Part shown: one piece after another, positions 4,341-14,902 of the stretch
How positions within the stretch are numbered: position 1 is the stretch's first letter
Layout of the letters: each line of letters opens with the position of its first letter
Assembly (NCBI RefSeq): GCF_000143415.4
Contig: NW_003314463.1
Span: forward strand, 11,885-26,786
Length of the DNA stretch: 14,902 nt
Source: Selaginella moellendorffii
Lineage: Eukaryota > Plantae > Lycopodiophyta
Direction: 5' to 3'
The notes under the pieces: model-generated
The model's database searches: none
What the model was told of the DNA's origin: nothing
Seen by the model: only the letters and a program-made list of their open reading frames with translations
Translations under genes and position numbers: made by a program

Positions 4341-5726
4341 GTAGGCAATAACAGCATCAATGCAGGGAAGAATGCTGTATCTGCCATGTGTATAAGTTTT
4401 GGAAAGCATTGCCATAGTTGCTCAAGAAAGAGAAAGAGATTGAAAAACACTAGAGGAAAAACTCATGCATATGTACCATCATTCCCGCCCAGCAAGTGTC
4501 TGGTAAATCTGAGAGAAAAGCTTTCACACTCCCACTGGGACCAAGTATGGAAGTAAAAAAACCAATTTTTTTTTATGATCTAGAGCTACATGCTAACGAT
4601 GAAATTCACGCCTTGCTGTGTCAGACAAATGACCCAACCTGCATAGTATCAAACTTGTAAGAAATGAGTACTACTTACATGAACAACCCCTGAAAATCAG
4701 TGTTGGCAAGGATGCATTCATGTCCTAGGCAATCTATGAGAAGATCCTCTGGGGTTTCAATCCCACAAACAGCAACAACAACCAAACAACCAACTTGAGT
4801 TCCTTCAACTCAATCACGAAGTAGACTGTCTCTCAGTTTCTCCGAGTGACCAAGTCAGCTTGCAGGGAGACTTATGATGCTACAAATATTAAACCTGGTG
4901 AATCAATCCTTTTAAGAGTGCCTTGGCTGGGAATTGAGTAAGCATGTGCATGGCCTTGCCACCAGTTTTCACCATCTATGCTCAGGTTACTACAAGCAAA
5001 AGCTTTGTTAGCTTCTTCTCAGAGATGAAAGAAAAACTCGAGCTACCTTCTGCAGTTCCATAAGCTAAGGAGTCCTTTCTGGTACATCCAAGCACATGAA
5101 GTTCCTTGGGTAAAAAATTGATAGCATAGACTGATTTTGTTTTTGAGTTGTATTTGTTATTATCACAGATTCAACAGCTGAAAGGGTGTTAAATCTTATC
5201 AAGTGGTGGGCTGTTCAATGAGCATGATAAAAATTAAAAATAGTAGAGAAGAAGGAGAAACCAAATGTCATACAAATAGCAGATAGCTTAAAAAAATAAA
5301 AGTTAGAATTTATGCTAGGGTCCTCCCATGATAAATTTAAATGATGATGTAAAACAAAATTAAAAATTTCACAATAATCTTAATAAATTTAAATAATACA
5401 GCTTTTTAATTATTAATAACGTAGCTACTGAATAGTTATATTACTATTGCAGTAAAATTAATGGCATGCATTGGAAATTGGGATTAGAGAAGTAACAAAA
5501 AATATGGAATTTTGTCACACATGATGACATTTTGACCCTTCTATGACAATACAAGTTTATGTGAGACACAAAATCCCTAGGCCCCAAAGTGGAGCCGGAA
5601 AGGGTGCCACGTGGTAGTGGCCGAAGCGAAAGCCAAACAAGCATAAAACGTTTGGACTAAAAGCTCCGACTTGGAAGGTCGAGAGCGGGAGTGGAACTCC
5701 CAACAAAGAGCTCGAGGAGCAAGCAC

Positions 5727-6226
5727 GAGGCGGACCCGAGATGGAGTCCGAGGCGGACCCGAGTTGGAGTCCGAGATGGACCCGAAGTAGAGTCCGAGAT
5801 GGACCCGAAGTGGAGTCCGATATGGAGTCCGAAGTGGAGTCCGAGATGGAGTCCGATATGAAGTCCAAAGTGGAGTCCGAGATGGAGTCCGAAGTGGAGT
5901 CCGAAGTGGAGTCCGAGATGGAGTCCGATATGGAGTCCGAGATGGACCCGAAGTGGAGTCCGATATGGAGTCCGAGATGGACCCGAAGTGGAGTTCGATA
6001 TGGAGTCCGAGATGGAGTCTGAGATGGACCCGAAGTGGAGTCCGATATGGAGTCCGAGATGGAGTCTGAGATGGAGTCCGAGATGGACCCGAAGTGGAGT
6101 CCGATATGGAGTCCGAGATGGAGTCCGAGACGGACCCGAGATGGAGTCCGAGATGGACCCGAGATGGAGTCCGAGATGGACCCGAGATGGAGTCCGAGAT
6201 GGAGTCCGAGATGGAACCGAGACCGG

Positions 6227-6263
<37 letters not shown>

Positions 6264-6290
6264 TCCGAGTCCGAGTCCGAGTCCGAGTCC
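5727..6290 (+). repeat. LTR minisatellite, copy A: ~42 units of 12/11 bp followed by (GAGACC)n(GAGTCC)n
   Basis: Units GAGATGGAGTCC, GAAGTGGAGTCC, GATATGGAGTCC and GAGATGGACCC, then 12 hexamers at 6219-6290. Confidence 0.97.
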
Positions 6291-6339
6291 GAATACTAAT
6301 ACAGGCAGTTGGGTGAAAGCCCAAAGCAATCGTCCCCCA

Positions 6340-6359
6340 GGGGGGGGGGGGGGGGGGGG
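6340..6359 (+). repeat. G20 homopolymer, specific to LTR A
   Basis: 20 consecutive G; the other LTRs have (T/A)GGGGGTTT(T)GGTGAG here. Confidence 0.9.
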
Positions 6360-6368
6360 TTCCAAAAG

Positions 6369-6376
6369 TATAGTAG
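6369..6376 (+). promoter_or_regulatory. Candidate LTR TATA-like box
   Basis: CCAAAAGTATAGTA is conserved in all three LTRs just downstream of the minisatellite and is a short AT-rich island in a GC-rich context. Function is inferred only. Confidence 0.35.
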
Positions 6377-8178
6377 GGAGAGTGTGGGGGTTGGAGCCCA
6401 GTGGAGCCAGTTTGGCCAGGAAAGGCCAGTTTGGCCCAGGAAGGCCAGACCCAGTGTTGGGTGATGAGCTGACCACTGGGAAGTCCAAGACTAGAGTGAA
6501 CACGGACCGACAAGCGGGGTAGCTTGGTGAAGTGTTCAAGAGCCGGCTCTAGTTCCCCCGGGAGATCGACTGGCTGATGCTCCCAGTCCAAGTGTGGGTG
6601 GCACTACCTACTTGGATACCAGGCGTGGCTCAACGGAACCTCGCTCTAAGCTCATGACTAGAGCACCCAAGGGCAGAAGGCGGGGAGAGTACCCAGGTGG
6701 CTCGCGTAAGGCCACGGTGTTCCGAAATGTTGTCCCAAAGGCCCAGACTGTGGAAAGGAAGAGGAGCAGTCCTCTGGGGTAGTGACCAAGGACACAGTCG
6801 TGTGGTGAGGAAGTCCCAGAGGACCGTGGGACTTAGTGGTCGGGCCTGTGGGCCTCGATCCAGTGGCAGTGTTGGCAAACACGGCCAGGGGTAGAAAGGG
6901 ACTTAGGGGAGACTGACAGAGGGATACTGGGGAAGGCTATTCCCCTTGTCGGTGGGCATCCTAAGGATGCTAAAGAGTGGATCTGAGATGACCACTCATG
7001 GATGGTTTGCCTAGTCTTGGAGAGCCAAGACTGTGATACAAGTGGTATTGGTCTACCAGTGTGGCAAAGGTGATTGGGCATTGCCTTAGTGTAACAGGTT
7101 GCCGTGTCGGTGGTACTTTTGAGTGTCGGACATGGGATCGGACACGTGGAGCACTTGGACCAAGTGCAAATGTTGAGTGGCATGGTGTAAGCGACTAAAT
7201 TTTCCATTCTACTTTAGTCACTTAACCACACCTCTGACCACTTGGAGGAGTCTCATTCACCACCTCCATAAGTCCAATCCAGGACTTGGGACTTGCTAGC
7301 CCCGAGAATGGCATCCATGCCACTTAACTTTTGCACTTGGTCCATGTGCTCCACGTGTCCGATCCCATGACCGACACTCAAAGGTACCACCGACATAGCA
7401 GCCCATCACGCTAAGGCCATGCCCAATCACCTTTGCCACACTGGTAGTCCAATACCACTTGCATCACCGTCTTGGCTCTCCAAGACTAGGCAAACCATCC
7501 GTGAGAGGTCATCTCAGATCCACTCCTTAGCATCCTTAGGATGCCCACCAACAAGGGGAATAACCTTCCCCAATATCCCTCTGTCAGTTCCCACTAAGTC
7601 CCTTTTTGCCCCTGGCCGTGTTTGCCAACACTGCCACTGGATCGAGACCCACAGGCCCGACCACTAAGTCCCACGGTCCTCTGGGACTTCCTCACCACAC
7701 GACTGTGTCCTTGGTCACTGCCCCAGAGGACTGTTCCTCTTCCTTTCCACAGTCTGGGCCTTCGGGACAACATTTCGGAACACCGTGGCCTTACGCGAGC
7801 CACCTGGGTACTCTCCTCGCCTTTCGCCTTTAGGTGCTCTAGCCATGGGCTTAGAGCGGGTTCCGTTGAGCCACACCAGGTATCCAAGTAGGTAGTGCCA
7901 CCCACACTTGGACTGGGAGCATCGGCCAGTCGATCTCCCGGGGGAACTAGAGCCGGCTCTTGAACACTTCACCAAGCTACCCCGCTTGTCGGTCTGTGTT
8001 CACTCTAGTCTTGGACTTCCCAGTGGGCAGCTCATCACCCAACACTGGGTCCGGCCTTCCTGGGCCAAACTGGCCTTTCCTGGCCAAACTGGCTCCACTG
8101 CAGTCCTCCCCCTACTATACTTTTGGAGCTCACCAAAACCCCCAGGGTCTGCGAGACGAACGCTTTGGGCTTTCACCC

Positions 8179-8626
8179 NNNNNNNNNNNNNNNNNNNNNN
8201 NNNNNNNNNNNNNNNNNNNNNNNNNNNNNNNNNNNNNNNNNNNNNNNNNNNNNNNNNNNNNNNNNNNNNNNNNNNNNNNNNNNNNNNNNNNNNNNNNNNN
8301 NNNNNNNNNNNNNNNNNNNNNNNNNNNNNNNNNNNNNNNNNNNNNNNNNNNNNNNNNNNNNNNNNNNNNNNNNNNNNNNNNNNNNNNNNNNNNNNNNNNN
8401 NNNNNNNNNNNNNNNNNNNNNNNNNNNNNNNNNNNNNNNNNNNNNNNNNNNNNNNNNNNNNNNNNNNNNNNNNNNNNNNNNNNNNNNNNNNNNNNNNNNN
8501 NNNNNNNNNNNNNNNNNNNNNNNNNNNNNNNNNNNNNNNNNNNNNNNNNNNNNNNNNNNNNNNNNNNNNNNNNNNNNNNNNNNNNNNNNNNNNNNNNNNN
8601 NNNNNNNNNNNNNNNNNNNNNNNNNN
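8179..8626. other. Assembly gap (448 N) inside the LTR minisatellite
   Basis: The N run begins where the hexamer array starts in the other copies. Confidence 1.
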
Positions 8627-9044
8627 TCCATCTCGGACTCCATCTCGGACTCCATCTCGGGTCCATCTCGGACTCCATCTCGGACTCCATTTCGGGTCCA
8701 TCTTGGGTCCACCTCGGACTCCATCTCGGACTCCATCTCGGACTCCATCTCGGGTCCATCTCGGACTCCACTTCGGACTCCAACTCGGGTCCATCTCGGG
8801 TCCACCTCGGACTCCACTTCGGACTCCATCTCGGACTCCATCTCGGGTCCATCTCGGACTCCACTTCGGACTCCAACTCGGGTCCATCTCGGGTCCACCT
8901 CGGACTCCATCTCGGACTCCATCTCGGGTCCATCTCGGACTCCACTTCGGACTCCAACTCGGGTCCATCTCGGACTCCACTTCGGACTCCAACTCGGGTC
9001 CATCTCGGACTCCACTTCGGACTCCAACTCGGGTCCATCTCGGA
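8627..9044 (-). repeat. LTR minisatellite, 3' LTR of B (continues into the gap)
   Basis: Same units in reverse complement; 35-bp higher-order repeat CATCTCGGACTCCACTTCGGACTCCAACTCGGGTC x3 at 8931-9035. Confidence 0.97.
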
Positions 9045-9276
9045 CACTCCCACGTGTCATGTGTTGGTCCTTTTGGGTCCCTTTTTGGAGCCTCGCCTTT
9101 TGCTCGCTTCGTGCTCGTTCCTCGAGCACTTCGTTGGGAGTTCCACTCCCGCTCTTGACATTTCAAGTCGGAGCTTTTGGTCCAAACGTGTTACGCTCGT
9201 TTGGCTCTCGCTTCGGCCACTACCAGGTGGCGCCCTTCCAGCTCCACTTTGGGGCCTAGGGATTTTGTGTCTCACA

Positions 9277-9290
9277 ACTCCACCACCCAT
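9277..9290 (-). promoter_or_regulatory. Polypurine tract
   Basis: Minus strand ATGGGTGGTGGAGT directly before TGTGAG of the 3' LTR. Confidence 0.75.
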
Positions 9291-9380
9291 AGACGAAGTT
9301 CGATATCCTCATCGAACGGTAAACCATTTTGTAAAGTAACACTCGCGTGTGTTACCATTTCCATCCTTGGCACCTAGCCA

Positions 9381-9511
9381 ATATTTGTCAATGGTTTGAC
9401 ATTGAAGGCTCACCATGCCTTCTCCATATTCGTCAATGGTTTAACATTGAAGGCTCACCATGCCTTTTGCATAGGCCTCCATGGTTTGACACCAAAGGCT
9501 CACCATGCCTT
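9381..9511. repeat. 45-bp tandem repeat, ~3 copies, upstream of the PPT
   Basis: ATGGTTT(G/A)ACA..(G/A)AAGGCTCACCATGCCTT starts at 9391, 9436 and 9481. Confidence 0.9.
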
Positions 9512-10019
9512 GCCTATCCTCTAAGGAGGGTAGTCTCTCCAACTTAGAGATTGATTGGACCACATGTAATGGTTCTCTCCTTTTATTGGTTTAGTCCTCG
9601 CTAAATCTCTTAGAGACCCTTCTCTAAGTCAATCCCACTACTCCTTCTCGAGTAGTCTCGATTTCCATCGATATAACCTTTGCACTTTGGAACTTTGAAT
9701 TTTGACTTCTTGGAGTCAATTTCCTAGGTGTCTCCGACACCTTGCCTTGCACCTTTTTGTGCAACTCCACTTCCCATCCTAGGAAGTTCTCTACTCGAGG
9801 GCACCATCATCCTCTTTTCTATTTCGTGCCAAAGTTCCAGTTATCATACTTTGTGCTAGGGCTGTTCATGGCCCTATCATTTGGCTACCTTACCGCTCCC
9901 TCCCTTGGAGCTTCCACTTTCGCCAAATCGGAGCATTTCGGAATCCCTCCTTGGAAACACACTTCCTTTCCCGCAACTTGTTAGCGTCCAACACATTAGT
10001 GTTCCTCGCCTAACTTTGT

Positions 10020-10510
10020 CACTTGGATTCCTTCCAAGGGATTCCACGGCCCTATCTTGGCCACTCATCTTTTGCTCCTATCCGTTGATTGTTGCACCAA
10101 GCAACATCGAATCTCTACCTCCCTTCTTGAGGTATTGTTTCGGTTCCATAGCAAAGACTCTTCTTTGCCAAGTCCGGAGGATGTTCACCCCTAGTACGTC
10201 TCTTTAGCATCTTCTGCTATGGGCTCTATCCACGGCCCAACTTCGTGACCCTCCCATGGGTCTTTTATAGAGACTACTTTCCTCGGACTCACTATGCCAT
10301 CGCACGGACATAGTTTATTTCCCTTAGGTGCTCTTCCCACTTGGTCATCACGACCAAGCCACACCACCTTAAACAATTCAATTTCAACATTTTGAACCAG
10401 GAACTTCATTCCTTAGCCAACCAAGGACCTTGTCCTTATCTGGCCATAAGATCACCTAGTGATCTCACCTTGGCACCTTAACAGAGTTGCCAAGAGGTAC
10501 TTGGTCTTCT
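10020..10510 (-). other. Possible chromodomain remnants downstream of integrase (chromovirus ancestry)
   Basis: Weak fragments KYLL, KFLVQ...KVVWLG, PWEGHEVGPWIEP and PWNPLEGI resemble YLVKWKG...TWEP; the position after GPY/F fits. Too degenerate to be sure. Confidence 0.3.
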
Positions 10511-10541
10511 AGACCTCCAAGTTGTTGACTATAACCCCGGG

Positions 10542-10816
10542 GGCATCCCCCACACTTGGCGGTGCACCCAAGCCAGCCCTTACGGCCAAGGGTTCATAGC
10601 AACTGAGATTAGGTGTCCCCATCTCACTCACCACGACCTTGGTGCCACTTGCACCAAAGCGTTCAAGTTAGATATGCTAAGCTTTCACACTAAGCAATCT
10701 AACCGTGCATCACGACTCCGAGGCATCCCTCGCTTGGCGGTGTGCCCAAACCAGTCTCCCCACTGAGAGTCCATGACCACCGAAATATGAGTGTCCTCAT
10801 ATTCCAAACCATCACC
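10542..10816. repeat. Degenerate ~100-bp duplication with ~180-bp period
   Basis: GGCATCCCCCACACTTGGCGGTGCACCCAAGCCAG...GTGTCCCCAT (from 10542) versus GGCATCCCTCGCTTGGCGGTGTGCCCAAACCAG...GTGTCCTCAT (from 10722). Confidence 0.7.
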
Positions 10817-10821
10817 ACGCC

Positions 10822-10933
10822 CTAGTGATTTGGGACTCGAACCCAAGCACTAGAGGGTCGGGACTCGAACCCAACCTCCGTATATGCATCTACGGACGGC
10901 ATCACACAAGATGCCTAGCGTGACTCCCCACGC
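10822..10933 (-). ncRNA. Putative tRNA-like structured module: five abutting hairpins, two with a TTCGAGT T-loop
   Basis: Minus strand: GCGTG-gggagt-CACGC, GGCATC-ttgtgt-GATGCC, TCCGTA-gatgcata-TACGGA, GGTTGGG-ttcgagt-CCCGACC, CTAGTGcTTGGG-ttcgagt-CCCAAatCACTAG, with spacers of 0-2 nt. Confidence 0.5.
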
Positions 10934-10949
10934 CGGTGCACCAACTTAT

Positions 10950-12030
10950 TTTTAAAGCGCGCTACAGATCACAGCTTAGGAACCTAGTTCCTCCACATTG
11001 CCAAGTCCTCTCACTTGACATGTCTGTGATCATGCATGGACTCCTCCATGCTCGGCCCCATGGCCCACCCTTTTTGAAGTTATCACCTTCAACTAGGGTA
11101 TTTGTTCCCCCGACGTGCCAATCTCGCTTGGCAAGTCCTCCGACCACTGTAACATGGTTCCTGCATAAGCGTGAAAGTCCTTGACCATCGACTTTCGTTC
11201 AAAGCCCTCTCTTTGAACACTCGGGAACTACTTCCCTAACCTTGATAGCCTTGCCTCATGGCAAGCTTCAAGACCACGCTTCTGCTGCGCCACTCTGATT
11301 TCGCGCGTTCCATGAACCATTTACACTTGGCCTTTCTAGGTACTAAGCTACCTAGAATCGTCTTTGGGAACCTTGAAGGAACTCTGTCCCTCAGCTTGCT
11401 AAGGCCTCCCTTTTGCAAGCCTTCCAAATGCCACATAGTCTAACATGGACAATTCCATAACTTAGACTCTTCATGGCATCACGGTTGCTAGCGGCAACAC
11501 CCTCGAGCCCCCACTTGATTCTCCACTCCCAACTGGCATAACCAACCTTGGTTATGCCCTTCGATTTCTATGGTTCAGTTCCATCCCAATACTACTTGCC
11601 TTTGGCTTCACACCTTTCCTTCGGTCATTCTCCTCCAGATCAGGAGGATAGCTTTGCACTTTCTATCATGCCTTAGCAAGTATTCTTAGGGATGAACTTA
11701 CCCAATAGCCCAGGGAGTGGTTCCTCAATCCGGGTATGCTCACCTTATAATCCCACACACTGGGATTACATTGTTGCTTATGGGCCTTTACATGCCCAGC
11801 ACTAGCCTTGCCAAAATTCCATTTTTGGCTTTGTCCAACTCGGGTAGACAGTCCTCTCCTGTCTCCGCAACCTTGGACATTTGGATAGCACCTTCTATCT
11901 ATCATTCGCTAGGGACTTAGTCCCTTGGGCTTTATCCATTGCCCTCGCGACATCAAACACCACTTTCTGGTGTTCTAGAGTGTTCGGGTGTCCCAATGAT
12001 GGCTTTCTTGACAATGAGTATTTCCTTTTA
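10950..12030 (-). pseudogene. Heavily decayed, internally deleted Ty3/gypsy pol (RT C-terminal half, RNase H traces, integrase core and GPY/F region)
   Basis: Residual motifs in gypsy order on the minus strand: EILIV (~12010-12024, cf. DDILIYS), LEHQKVVFDV (11949-11978), K-EFWQ..GHV (~11790-11830), GY-KFIP (~11690-11710, cf. GYYRRFIP), WHLEG (~11420-11435), RFPKTILGSLVPR (~11335-11375, cf. GLPxxIVSDRDPRF), DGQ (11181-11189), QWSEDLP (~11130-11150), VEGD...AWRSPCMITDMSSERTW (~11000-11095, cf. RWxGPYxI). Confidence 0.7.
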
Positions 12031-13405
12031 TGACATTGACTTACTATATCGCAACACAAGCAACTTATCCCCCGTAAGGGTATATGCGACTTCCCTATGC
12101 TATTAAGAAGTCTTGGGTAGCTACCTTCTACCCGTTTAACTAGTTATTTTGCACCTCTTGCTTAGTTGCCTCATAGTTGTCAAGTCCTACAACTCATTGC
12201 TTGGTGCTTTCACACCTCCATCATTATCTGGGTCACCACACTCCAACTGCATGCTTTGCAGCTTAGGCTATGCCATTCCCATTTCCATTGGGATTCCTTT
12301 GGCAAGGGGTTCTCATGAACCCACCAACATAACCTCAAGGTATCACACCTTGGCACATTTGGTGTCTCCACACCATCGGCTCCACGAGCTTACCTCTATG
12401 ACACTTCTTCTTTGTGTCTAAGTCTTTGCCAAGACCAATACCACTCTTTCTCATGCCAACCATCTGTTAGCACTGCATCATAGAGGTCACACACAACTTT
12501 GTGTCAAAGTTGTTTTCTTTTTGGGAACACCTTTCCCACGACTTTAGCATGGCACATTTTGCCATCGATGAGATACCCTCTGTTCTCATCCTTGGATCCT
12601 ATAATCCCCCCCCCCATCCTTTGTAAGGTACAACACACCTTAGTCCAAATGCTTCCATCAGTCCTTTTAGGACCGTCCTTTGACTCTACTTGAGTCATCC
12701 AGCAGTTTTGGACTTGGTTAATCCACAGACCCGTAAGGTCCTACTTATGAGGCACTAGCTCACTGGAATACACTTCTTGCATTCCTGTCCCACTCAAAAG
12801 GACTATTTTCACAAGTGTTACTCTGACACTTGATTTTGTTCTCTGGGGGCAACCTTTGCCCCTTAGGACTACTTGTCCATGTGATGAGAATACCACTCAT
12901 CTCTAAGTACACCCCCCAACTCCTTGGGTTGTTCCAGCATTTATTAAAGGTAGCCCCGGCTACCATTTCAAGGACTTGAGTCCTCTTTCGTATTTGACCT
13001 CCCACGGTCATTACTTCTGGTCTCACATTCATGAGCACCAACCTCAACTATATGAGGATAATCTTATGACTCCTTTATTGTTTTGGAGTCTCTATCTTTC
13101 CCGTGATCCTAACTATAGTTGTTTACCACAACTACCTTAGCCAACTTGCTGAGACAAATGCTCATCCAGATCACATCCTCAACTCAATGAGGAAAACCTT
13201 GCACTGTTCCCAAGATCCCAAAGTCGTTCCATTATTGGCCCTTTTCTATCCACCACCTTGTCTACAAGTTCACACATGAACTGTAATGGAGAGCCATGTC
13301 TTCCTGACTTGCTACTCCTCAAGGATAGGCCCACTCCTCAGACCTTCCAATGCCAACACTAGTGGTGATATACTTGAGCACCAATAAAAGTCGGATTAAG
13401 GAACA

Positions 13406-13417
13406 GCTCCGATACCA
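13406..13417 (-). promoter_or_regulatory. Primer-binding site, initiator tRNA-Met type
   Basis: Minus strand TGGTATCGGAGC, 3 nt after the LTR end ...CTTACA. The canonical plant tRNAiMet PBS is TGGTATCAGAGC; the A>G change gives a G-U pair. Confidence 0.9.
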
Positions 13418-14298
13418 AATTGTAAGCGACTAATTTTTCCATTCTACTTTAGTCACTTAACCACACCTCCGACCACTTGGAGGAGTCTCATTCACAACCT
13501 CCATAAGTCCAATCCAGGACTTGGGATTTGCTAGCCCCGAGAATGGCATCCATGCCACTCAACATTTGCACTTGGTCCAAGTGCTCCACGTGTCCGATCC
13601 CATGACCGACACTCAAAAGTACCACCGATATGGCAGCCCGTTACGCTAAGGCCATGCCCAATCACCTTTGCCACACTGGTAGTCCATTACCACTTGCATC
13701 ACAGTCTTGGCTCTCCAGGACTAGGCAAACCCTCCGTGAGTGGTCATCTCAGATCCACTCCTTAGCATCCTTAGGATGCCCACCGACAAGGGGAATAGCT
13801 TTCCCCAATATCCCTCTATCAGTCCCCACTAAGTCCCTTTCTGCCCCTGGCCGTGTTTGCCAACACTGCCACTGGATCGAGACCCACAGGCCCGACCACT
13901 AAGTCCCATAGTCCTCTGGGACTTCCTCACCACACGACTGTGTCCTTGGTCACTACCCCAGAGGACTGCTCCTCTTCCTTTCCATAGTCTGGGCCTTTGG
14001 GACAACATTTCGGAACACCGTGGCCCTACGCGGGCCTCATGGGTACTCTCCCTGCCTTTCGCCTTTGGGTGCTCTAGCCATGGGGTTAGAGCGAGGTTCC
14101 GTTGAGCCACACCAGGTATCCAAGTAGGTAGTGCCACCCACACTTGGACTGGGAGCATCGGCCAGTTGATCTCCCGGGGGAACTAGAGCCGGCTCTTGAA
14201 CACTTCACCAAGCTACCCCGCTTGTCAGTCCGTGTTCACTCTAGTCTTGGACTTCCCAGTGGGCAGTTCCTCACCCAACACTGGGTCCGGCCTTCCTG

Positions 14299-14348
14299 GG
14301 CCAAACTGGCCTTTCCTGGCCAAACTGGCCTTTCCTGGCCAAACTGGC
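14299..14348. repeat. 19-bp tandem unit GGCCAAACTGGCCTTTCCT with one more copy than in the other two LTRs
   Basis: Three GGCCAAACTGGC here versus two at ~8062-8093 and ~6406-6436. Confidence 0.85.
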
Positions 14349-14438
14349 TCCACTGCAGTCCTCCCCCTTACTATACTTTTGGAGCTCACCAAACCCCCTA
14401 GGGTCTGGGAGACGAACGCTTTGGGCTTTCACCCTCTC

Positions 14439-14803
14439 AGACTCGGACTCGGACTCGGACTCGGACTTGGACTCGGGCTCGGTCTCGGCCTTGGCCCTTG
14501 TCTCGGTCTCGGTCCCGGTCTCGGTCTCGGTCTCGATCCCGGTCTCGGTCTCGGTCTCGGTCCCGGTCTCGGTCTCGACCTCGGACTCCATCTCGGGTCC
14601 TTCTCGGACTCCATCTCGGACTCCGTCTCGGTCCATCTCAGACTCCATCTCGGACTCCATCTCGGGTCCATCTCGGAATCCATCTCGGGTCCATCTCGGA
14701 CTCCGTCTCGGTCCATCTCGGACTCCGTCTCGGGTCCATCTTGGACTCCAATTCGGGTCCATCTCGGACTCCAACTCGGGTCCGCCTCGGACTCCATCTC
14801 GGA
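14439..14803 (-). repeat. LTR minisatellite, 5' LTR of B
   Basis: About 140 bp of GGACTC/GGTCTC hexamers, then ~220 bp of 12/11/10-bp units. Confidence 0.97.
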
Positions 14804-14902
14804 CACTTCCATGTGTCATGTGTTGGTCCTTTTTGGGTCCCTTTTTGGAGCCTTTCTTATTGGTTGTCTCGTGCTTGCTCCTCGAGCACTTTGTTGGGAG
14901 TG

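Follow-up and report, generated by a model that had tools for sequence, protein, structure and literature searches.

The window analyzed here comprises 14,902 nucleotides of the lycophyte Selaginella moellendorffii (contig NW_003314463.1 of assembly GCF_000143415.4, positions 11,885 to 26,786 of the forward strand), and all coordinates below count from its first letter. Its minus strand carries a plant-type, non-autonomous long terminal repeat (LTR) retrotransposon that is similar to the large retrotransposon derivatives (LARDs, for example Sukkula), and this element holds an element-wide array of about 55–85 short perfect hairpins, about one per 50–75 nt. Read on its own strand, the element consists of a 5' LTR, a tRNA-Met-type primer binding site (PBS), a non-coding internal domain of 4.1 kb, a polypurine tract and a 3' LTR, and a third LTR copy adjoins it in the opposite orientation:

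13421..14902, minus strand: 5' LTR, partial, cut by the end of the window; it ends ...CTTACA at 13421 and holds 12-nt and 19-nt tandem repeats
13406..13417, minus strand: PBS TGGTATCGGAGC, 3 nt past the LTR end, 11 of 12 bases as in the plant tRNA-Met type PBS TGGTATCAGAGC
9277..13420, minus strand: internal domain, 4144 nt, non-coding, longest stop-free stretch 95 aa
9277..9290, minus strand: polypurine-like tract ATGGGTGGTGGAGT, directly upstream of the 3' LTR start TGTGAGACAC
7186..9276, minus strand: 3' LTR with TG...CA ends, beginning TGTGAG; an assembly gap at 8179–8626 lies within a 12-nt satellite
5560..7185, plus strand: third LTR copy, opposite in orientation, without its last 129 nt, tail to tail with the 3' LTR (inverted repeats I1–I4)

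The 5' LTR forms a direct repeat with 7186–9141, in blocks that are 94–98% identical, and the third copy is ~94.4% identical to both other LTR copies. The position of the LTR start was set by comparison with the third copy at 5560. The LTRs are at least 2.0 kb long, and the length of the 3' LTR is uncertain because its assembly gap sits in the satellite. The PBS was called by its match to a literature motif; motifs of the TGGTATCAGAGC type are attested in the literature as the PBS of plant retroelements and pararetroviruses. At the other end of the internal domain, the polypurine run GGGTGGTGGAG at 9288–9278 adjoins the 3' LTR, and the sense strand of the domain as a whole is purine-rich (A 30, G 30, T 23 and C 18%). 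Since the element has no coding capacity, its mobility must depend on a partner. Searches of the window with Rfam (both strands, gathering threshold) and with ARAGORN returned no matches and no tRNA, respectively.

To define the array, we counted perfect stems of at least 6 bp with loops of 3–8 nt and compared the counts with those in dinucleotide-preserving shuffles:

Internal domain, 4144 nt: 55 stems observed against 4.70 +/- 2.18 expected (shuffle maximum 13)
Unique part of each LTR copy: 6–7 observed against 1.4–1.6 expected
Flank, 5.4 kb: 13 observed against 9.7 expected

The excess in the internal domain is thus about 12-fold. When the stems of this domain were sorted by length, observed and shuffled counts were as follows:

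4 bp: 62 against 57
5 bp: 44 against 14
6 bp: 34 against 3.5
7 bp: 14 against 0.9
8 bp: 4 against 0.2
at least 9 bp: 3 against 0.08

Stems of 4 bp therefore occur at chance level and the excess is restricted to 5–10 bp, giving a surplus of ~80 hairpins in the internal domain. The enrichment is likewise limited to loops of 3–12 nt; long-range pairing was rejected as a component, loops of 13–52 nt being at background. In steps of 500 nt the profile is flat across the element, with 4–8 stems per step, and falls to near zero outside it. Folding energies follow the same pattern: per 150 nt, the z-score averages -2.7 on the sense and -3.15 on the antisense strand of the internal domain, and the LTRs average about -1.5 to -2 and the flank 0.0. 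A genome-wide property was rejected as the source of the stems, the flanking DNA being at baseline in both stem counts and folding. One part of the internal domain departs from the pattern: the segment 11976–12275 has few stems and is the only one with fold z-scores near 0 on both strands (0.6/1.3 and -0.1/0.3). This segment may be of different origin or age.

An earlier note on this DNA had drawn attention to five inverted repeats between 11034 and 11974. It had proposed that they coincide with decayed reverse transcriptase and integrase motifs of a gypsy element, and that the changes which destroyed these motifs were the ones that completed the stems. All five repeats exist letter for letter as that note wrote them, on the minus strand, and the translations it quoted (ILGSLVPR, AWRSPC, ..VDGQGLS.., EHQKVVF and KMEFW, the last reading KWNFG in another frame) are present as stated, although they fall in two frames that are broken by many stops. 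The five stems, with the three others of at least 7 bp in the same region, are:

11334..11357, minus strand: stem 1, TTCTAGGTA gcttag TACCTAGAA, 9 bp, loop of 6
11034..11051, minus strand: stem 2, GCATGGA ggag TCCATGC, 7 bp, loop of 4 (GGAG)
11173..11196, minus strand: stem 3, GAAAGTC gatggtcaag GACTTTC, 7 bp, loop of 10
11956..11974, minus strand: stem 4, AACACCA gaaag TGGTGTT, 7 bp, loop of 5
11810..11829, minus strand: stem 5, GCCAAAA atggaa TTTTGGC, 7 bp, loop of 6
11535..11558, minus strand: GGCATAACCA aggt TGGTTATGCC, 10 bp, the longest stem of the element, absent from the earlier note
11197–11218 and 11748–11768, minus strand: two further stems of 8 bp each, also absent from it

Within 11034–11974 we thus found 8 perfect stems of at least 7 bp with loops of 3–12 nt, against 0.47 in dinucleotide shuffles, and 13 of at least 6 bp with loops of 3–8 nt, against 0.99 +/- 1.02 (shuffle maximum 5). 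The region folds with z-scores of -11.0 on the minus and -10.5 on the plus strand. Chance and base composition are ruled out by these shuffles as the source of the stems, and the pattern is more pronounced than the earlier note supposed. The stems are nevertheless not special to the five motif sites, as the region holds three more of at least 7 bp and their density is equal across the whole element. Stems of at least 6 bp cover 29% of the region, and a randomly placed 24-nt site overlaps a stem by at least 6 nt in 45% of cases, or in 25% of cases when only stems of at least 7 bp are considered. Because 25–45% of random sites meet a stem, no weight can be given to the fact that five selected stems fall on five weak motif look-alikes, and the proposed link between loss of motifs and completion of stems is unsupported. 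All five belong to the ordinary stock of the element-wide array.

The hairpins have a distinctive character. Stems are strictly Watson-Crick and end abruptly. Perfect stems of at least 7 bp number 21 against 1.2 expected, whereas stems of at least 7 pairs interrupted by one mismatch number 13 against 3.5, and among their mismatches G:T (2) is no commoner than A:C (2). In minimum free energy (MFE) folds G-U accounts for 11% of pairs, compared with 17.5% in shuffles, and folding is equally good on either strand. On the sense strand, loop composition is biased: C makes up 6.9% of loop bases (18.5% in chance loops, p = 2e-8; ~15% in stem flanks), 72% of loop bases are purines, and 80% of C is paired in MFE folds. 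The commonest loop is GGAG (3 loops), and GAG and GTG loops also recur. Deamination of C to U in exposed loops was considered and rejected, T not being raised there. A recurring hairpin motif, or a unit similar to a miniature inverted-repeat transposable element, was also rejected, the arms being diverse and the commonest 5-mer, CCAAG, occurring only 6 times. Nor is there a consistent 5'/3' polarity of the arms (27 versus 18, not significant). The earlier note had suggested that stepwise changes through G-U pairs would point to selection and clustered copying of arms to template switching. No G-U signal was found and folding is strand-symmetric, which leans towards templated Watson-Crick copying.

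We then asked whether the internal domain retains any trace of a pol gene. Pfam searches, run on the 10 longest pieces and subsequently on all 60 stop-free pieces of at least 24 aa in the three sense frames, identified no retroelement family even at E<=10. In the same window, used as a positive control, Pfam detected pieces of 39 and 58 aa of a probable FGAR-AT pseudogene. A phmmer search of PDB with four pieces gave chance matches only, with no Ty3 or retroviral reverse transcriptase or integrase. When the most pol-like piece (80 aa, 11669–11908) was compared by phmmer with 1.84 billion representative proteins, it gave one match only, P0001, which was rejected as a pol relative: it is a proline/threonine-rich tandem-repeat protein without a Pfam domain, the score is a sum over repeats, and pairwise identity is 9/30. 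The sites therefore lack any gag or pol homology that these searches detect, and the element does not show the recognizable gag and pol, in the order PR-RT-RNaseH-IN, by which Ty3/gypsy elements (Metaviridae) are defined. The ancestral codons of the earlier note therefore remain assumptions. The fifth motif, described earlier as shortened, is not: frame 0 reads K-W-N-F-G, equal in length to K-C-E-F-G. Look-alikes can still be lined up by eye in the order EH..VF, K.(E/N)F(W/G), ..LPGLLG.., I..S...PR, DGQ and W..P, and the 80-aa frame reads K-W-N-F-G..GHV..NP..W..P..LR..LG.YW. We take this order to be roughly that of gypsy pol, a by-eye comparison with consensus motifs and not a tool result. Part of the internal domain may descend, distantly, from a pol gene; any vestige is too eroded to detect, so the coincidence proposed between stems and catalytic motifs is post hoc.

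The LTRs provide a clock for the array. The element's two LTRs are 95.4% identical over 908 nt, which corresponds to ~2% change per site since insertion. This is too little change to erase a pol gene, all open reading frames and every domain signal; the element must therefore have been non-coding before it moved, which contradicts the idea that a pol gene decayed at this locus. Nearly every LTR stem is common to the three LTR copies; where one is missing, a substitution in a single copy has broken it. Taking the third copy as outgroup, we assigned a direction, one site at a time, to the 38 differences that separate the two LTRs, and compared their effects on stems with those of random substitutions of the same transition bias:

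Stems of at least 6 bp: 4 losses and 0 gains among 38 polarized substitutions; random substitutions, loss 10–11%, gain 1.6%
Stems of at least 5 bp: 4 losses and 4 gains among 38; random substitutions, loss 15–17%, gain 5–6%

The polarized changes thus match random-substitution rates, and no excess of stem-creating substitutions over the neutral level was found. Because LTR stems are shared by the three copies and their loss and gain are neutral, the array is older than the insertion: it was present when the element inserted and has since been eroded at the neutral rate, neither built nor protected. The array is a property of the transposing lineage and not the product of pol decay at the locus. 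Of the directional process proposed earlier, one part stands, in that stem formation is strongly non-random and something directional, be it templated mutation, selection or both, must have made the stems; it dates to the history of the lineage before insertion, and a directional process after insertion is not supported.

One stretch of the 5' LTR (~14005–14020, minus strand; alignment columns 406–419) carries 4 substitutions in 14 nt, against 19 in ~900 nt overall. They turn GTGGC..GCCAC with a 9-nt loop into GGCCC/gcgta/GGGCC. Both arms are altered, and hence this is no clean single template-switch event; the four changes arose either as clustered mutations within a quasi-palindrome after insertion or through conversion of a short tract by another copy.

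Two sets of repeats within the internal domain allow diverged hairpins to be compared:

10534..10848, minus strand: diverged internal duplication, 10848–10715 against 10660–10534, 64% identity
9381..9515, minus strand: three tandem 45-nt units, ~90 nt upstream of the polypurine tract, two short stems per unit

The duplication has a local alignment score of 67, against a shuffle maximum of 41. Both of its units hold hairpins at corresponding places, mostly with different inner sequence or in a shifted register, and there is one clean same-register double change from A-T to G-C. RNAalifold applied to the two units found 6/34 pairs changed on both sides, a figure that comes from 2 sequences only and in which the registers of the perfect stems differ. 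Each 45-nt unit has an identical core, AAGGCATGGTGAGCCTT, that forms a small stem. Where the two younger units pair perfectly, the oldest shows G-U pairs or mismatches, and the triplet contains no compensatory changes.

We favor, with moderate confidence, the explanation that the array was acquired during the replicative history of the family by templated inverted copying, by selection on the genomic RNA, or by both. Under this explanation, repeated rounds of replication would have produced the stems through inverted templated copying or quasi-palindrome correction, with reverse transcriptase or a replicative polymerase switching templates. Such copying is suggested by the perfection of the stems, the lack of G-U pairs and the strand symmetry of folding. 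The stems would then be retained because selection favors an RNA that is built from numerous local hairpins and exposes purine loops; the benefit could lie in being recognized and packaged by trans-supplied Gag/nucleocapsid, or in RNA stability or inaccessibility. Retention by selection on the RNA is suggested by the confinement of the array to the retroelement, by the near-universal perfection of the stems at insertion and by their C-poor, purine-rich loops. Our most concrete guess at a function is that the hairpins would help the element, as a parasite of particles made by another, to be packaged.

Several observations weigh against this explanation. A single internal domain is available, and no relative was found in the collections searched. 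These collections were a protein index, exact-ORF look-ups, viral contigs and metagenome contigs, none of which included plant genomes searchable by DNA. In them, a word-indexed protein search with an internal piece and an LTR ORF, the exact-ORF look-ups, exact DNA patterns in viral contigs and, in metagenome contigs, a 24-nt LTR pattern that all three copies share each found nothing related; six back-translated peptides, also scanned against metagenomes, produced 600 pattern matches, 0 of them confirmed. The packaging idea is drawn solely from analogy with retroviruses, and the autonomous partner is putative. The paralogous hairpins are weak as covariation evidence since their registers mostly differ. 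The arms show no significant segregation of purines to one side (statistic 1.14; null 1.00 +/- 0.18), and with ~1.4 expected from inverted copying of a purine-rich background, simple snap-back copying is not clearly supported. Finally, strand-symmetric folding fits just as well with a role at the DNA level.

The first alternative, which we regard as rather unlikely, is that the array is a pure mutational by-product. Self-priming or snap-back of nascent cDNA by reverse transcriptase, or replicative template switching, would write functionless inverted copies into a sequence free of coding constraint. Mutations of this template-switch or quasi-palindrome kind are reportedly covered by the Ripley model and by the studies of Löytynoja and Goldman and of Mönttinen and Löytynoja (2022). 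In DNA replication, template switching is documented to yield reverse-complement copies that create, perfect or repair short Watson-Crick stems in one event (PMC8794818). The stems described here resemble such products in being perfect, without G-U pairs and equally foldable on both strands, and their restriction to the retroelement, with none of the excess in the flank, is what a mutator tied to retrotransposition would give. The 4 substitutions clustered within a quasi-palindrome of one LTR copy also fit. Template-switch events are, however, sporadic and genome-wide, unlike a ~12-fold excess confined to one retroelement with its flank at baseline. Copying that is blind to composition does not predict the depletion of C in the loops, and the arms show no clear asymmetry between template and copy. 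Nearly all stems are perfect and few are interrupted, which implies that they were kept perfect until insertion, and the paralogous units, although 36% diverged, still have their hairpins at matching positions.

A second alternative, selection acting solely on the genomic RNA, appears about as unlikely. It would require point mutations to be sieved for a beads-on-a-string RNA whose purine-loop hairpins serve as putative Gag/nucleocapsid sites, or shield it from silencing or nucleases, giving the element an edge in hijacking its partner's particles. The loop bias argues for such selection, being specific to the sense strand with GGAG, GAG and GTG recurring, as does the commitment of most C to stems. 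The hairpin positions kept between diverged paralogous units, with their one clean A-T to G-C swap, point the same way. There are also precedents: conserved RNA structure has been reported for LARDs (PMC7215508), and apical purine loops such as GGAG are Gag-binding and packaging determinants in retroviruses, among them mouse mammary tumor virus (MMTV) and human immunodeficiency virus type 1 (HIV-1) (PMC8096270). On the other hand, selection on RNA normally tolerates G-U pairs, yet these are rarer here than in shuffles; folding of the antisense strand is at least as strong as that of the sense strand; and stems also occur in the U3 parts of the LTR. A bolder variant combines both processes. The whole RNA may have been turned into ~55–85 minimal perfect purine-loop hairpins that would act as a multivalent decoy or super-packaging substrate for the partner's Gag/nucleocapsid, or as a silencing-resistant RNA; templated inverted copying in the course of reverse transcription would both build the array and keep it perfect. 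We offer this variant as speculation and think it rather improbable.

A third alternative places the dyad symmetry at the DNA level, the element belonging to a class such as centromere-associated retroelements in which cruciform or other non-B DNA would be kept for a putative chromosomal role. Strictly Watson-Crick, strand-symmetric stems of 5–10 bp are the expectation of DNA cruciform models, the locus is a nested, pseudogene-bearing region of transposable elements, and dyad symmetries <10 bp are reportedly enriched in retrotransposon-rich plant centromeres (PMC9910436). We consider this account quite unlikely: it does not predict a loop bias on the sense strand, neutral erosion after insertion gives no sign of maintenance in place, and the effect in the literature is a modest shift in density, much weaker than a 12-fold excess, with no bias in loop composition reported. 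Least probable is the earlier model of an intact gypsy pol that decayed at the locus into stems, for which the by-eye order of look-alikes speaks, and against which stand the lack of pol homology by any tool, the LTR identity, which leaves too little time for decay in place, stems equally dense in the PBS-proximal part and in the LTRs, which never encoded protein, the absence of post-insertion changes that build stems of at least 6 bp and the frequency with which random motif-sized sites overlap a stem.

The element described here belongs to a known kind, the non-autonomous LTR retrotransposons whose non-coding domain is structured; its hairpins are unusual in being so dense and so perfect and in the composition of their loops. 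LARDs are non-coding, and together with terminal-repeat retrotransposons in miniature (TRIMs) they have been described as specifying well-conserved RNA secondary structures (PMC7215508). The Selaginella element shares with them long LTRs, a PBS, a polypurine tract and a multi-kilobase internal domain without coding capacity, but is set apart from the LARDs as described by a dense, regular array of very short perfect purine-loop hairpins and by its extreme fold z-scores. Our literature search found no description of such a hairpin array. The hairpins resemble stem-loop SL3 of HIV-1, with its GGAG, and the single-stranded purine loop of MMTV in that they are short stem-loops with unpaired G/A-rich loops, of which GGAG is the commonest. 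Retroviral packaging signals consist of few hairpins in the 5' leader, in contrast to ~55–85 predicted hairpins spread over the whole RNA. Retrozymes are non-autonomous LTR elements that give rise to highly structured circular RNAs and have LTRs of a few hundred bases. Like them, the present element is non-coding, has a tRNA-Met PBS and is predicted to fold into a highly structured RNA, but it contains no hammerhead ribozyme or other Rfam family, is far larger and has LTRs of ~2 kb.

If the array proves to be a family trait, it would offer a handle on how LARDs and TRIMs are recognized and packaged by proteins that they do not encode. It would also provide an unusually clean natural test of template switching versus stepwise selection as the origin of perfect RNA/DNA stems, with dozens of independent young stems in one unconstrained sequence and many genomic copies to compare. 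Should the decoy or super-packaging variant be true, it would represent both a strategy of structural parasitism and a retroelement-specific mutational signature, neither of which has been described. For annotation, two lessons follow: motif look-alikes without detectable homology should not serve as ancestral states, and an age based on LTR identity can place apparent decay before insertion.

The remaining observations concern the surroundings and the repeats of the LTRs. At the 7185/7186 junction, the plus-oriented LTR copy, without its last 129 nt, meets the 3' end of the minus-strand element. The arrangement suggests a nested insertion, the target being an older member of the same family whose matching half would lie beyond the window. 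Every LTR copy contains the 12-nt satellite CCGAGATGGAGT and its variants, with 6-nt CCGAGA runs, in differing copy numbers (5736–6292, 8627–9045 and 14435–14804). The 19-nt unit GGCCTTTCCTGGCCAAACT is present in 3.2 copies at 14289–14348, 2.2 at 8053–8093 and 2.3 at 6406–6448; as its copy number differs among the LTR copies, it has changed after insertion even between the two LTRs of one element. In the flank, fragments similar to the PurM_N domain of a plant-like FGAR-AT (FGAM synthase, purine synthesis) lie at 2351–2814 on the plus strand as two colinear pieces separated by a short intron-like gap. These are the pieces of 39 and 58 aa that served as the Pfam control, matching PF22689 with E = 1e-5 and 1e-4, and the next piece (..YVTCPDIT..TPDLK) runs on in a different frame. 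Together they look like a frameshifted pseudogene or unannotated exons. Just upstream, at 2062–2102 on the plus strand, the flank holds two overlapping, mutually exclusive hairpins of 7–8 bp, TTATTGCA..TGCAATAA and CAAAGGT..ACCTTTG.

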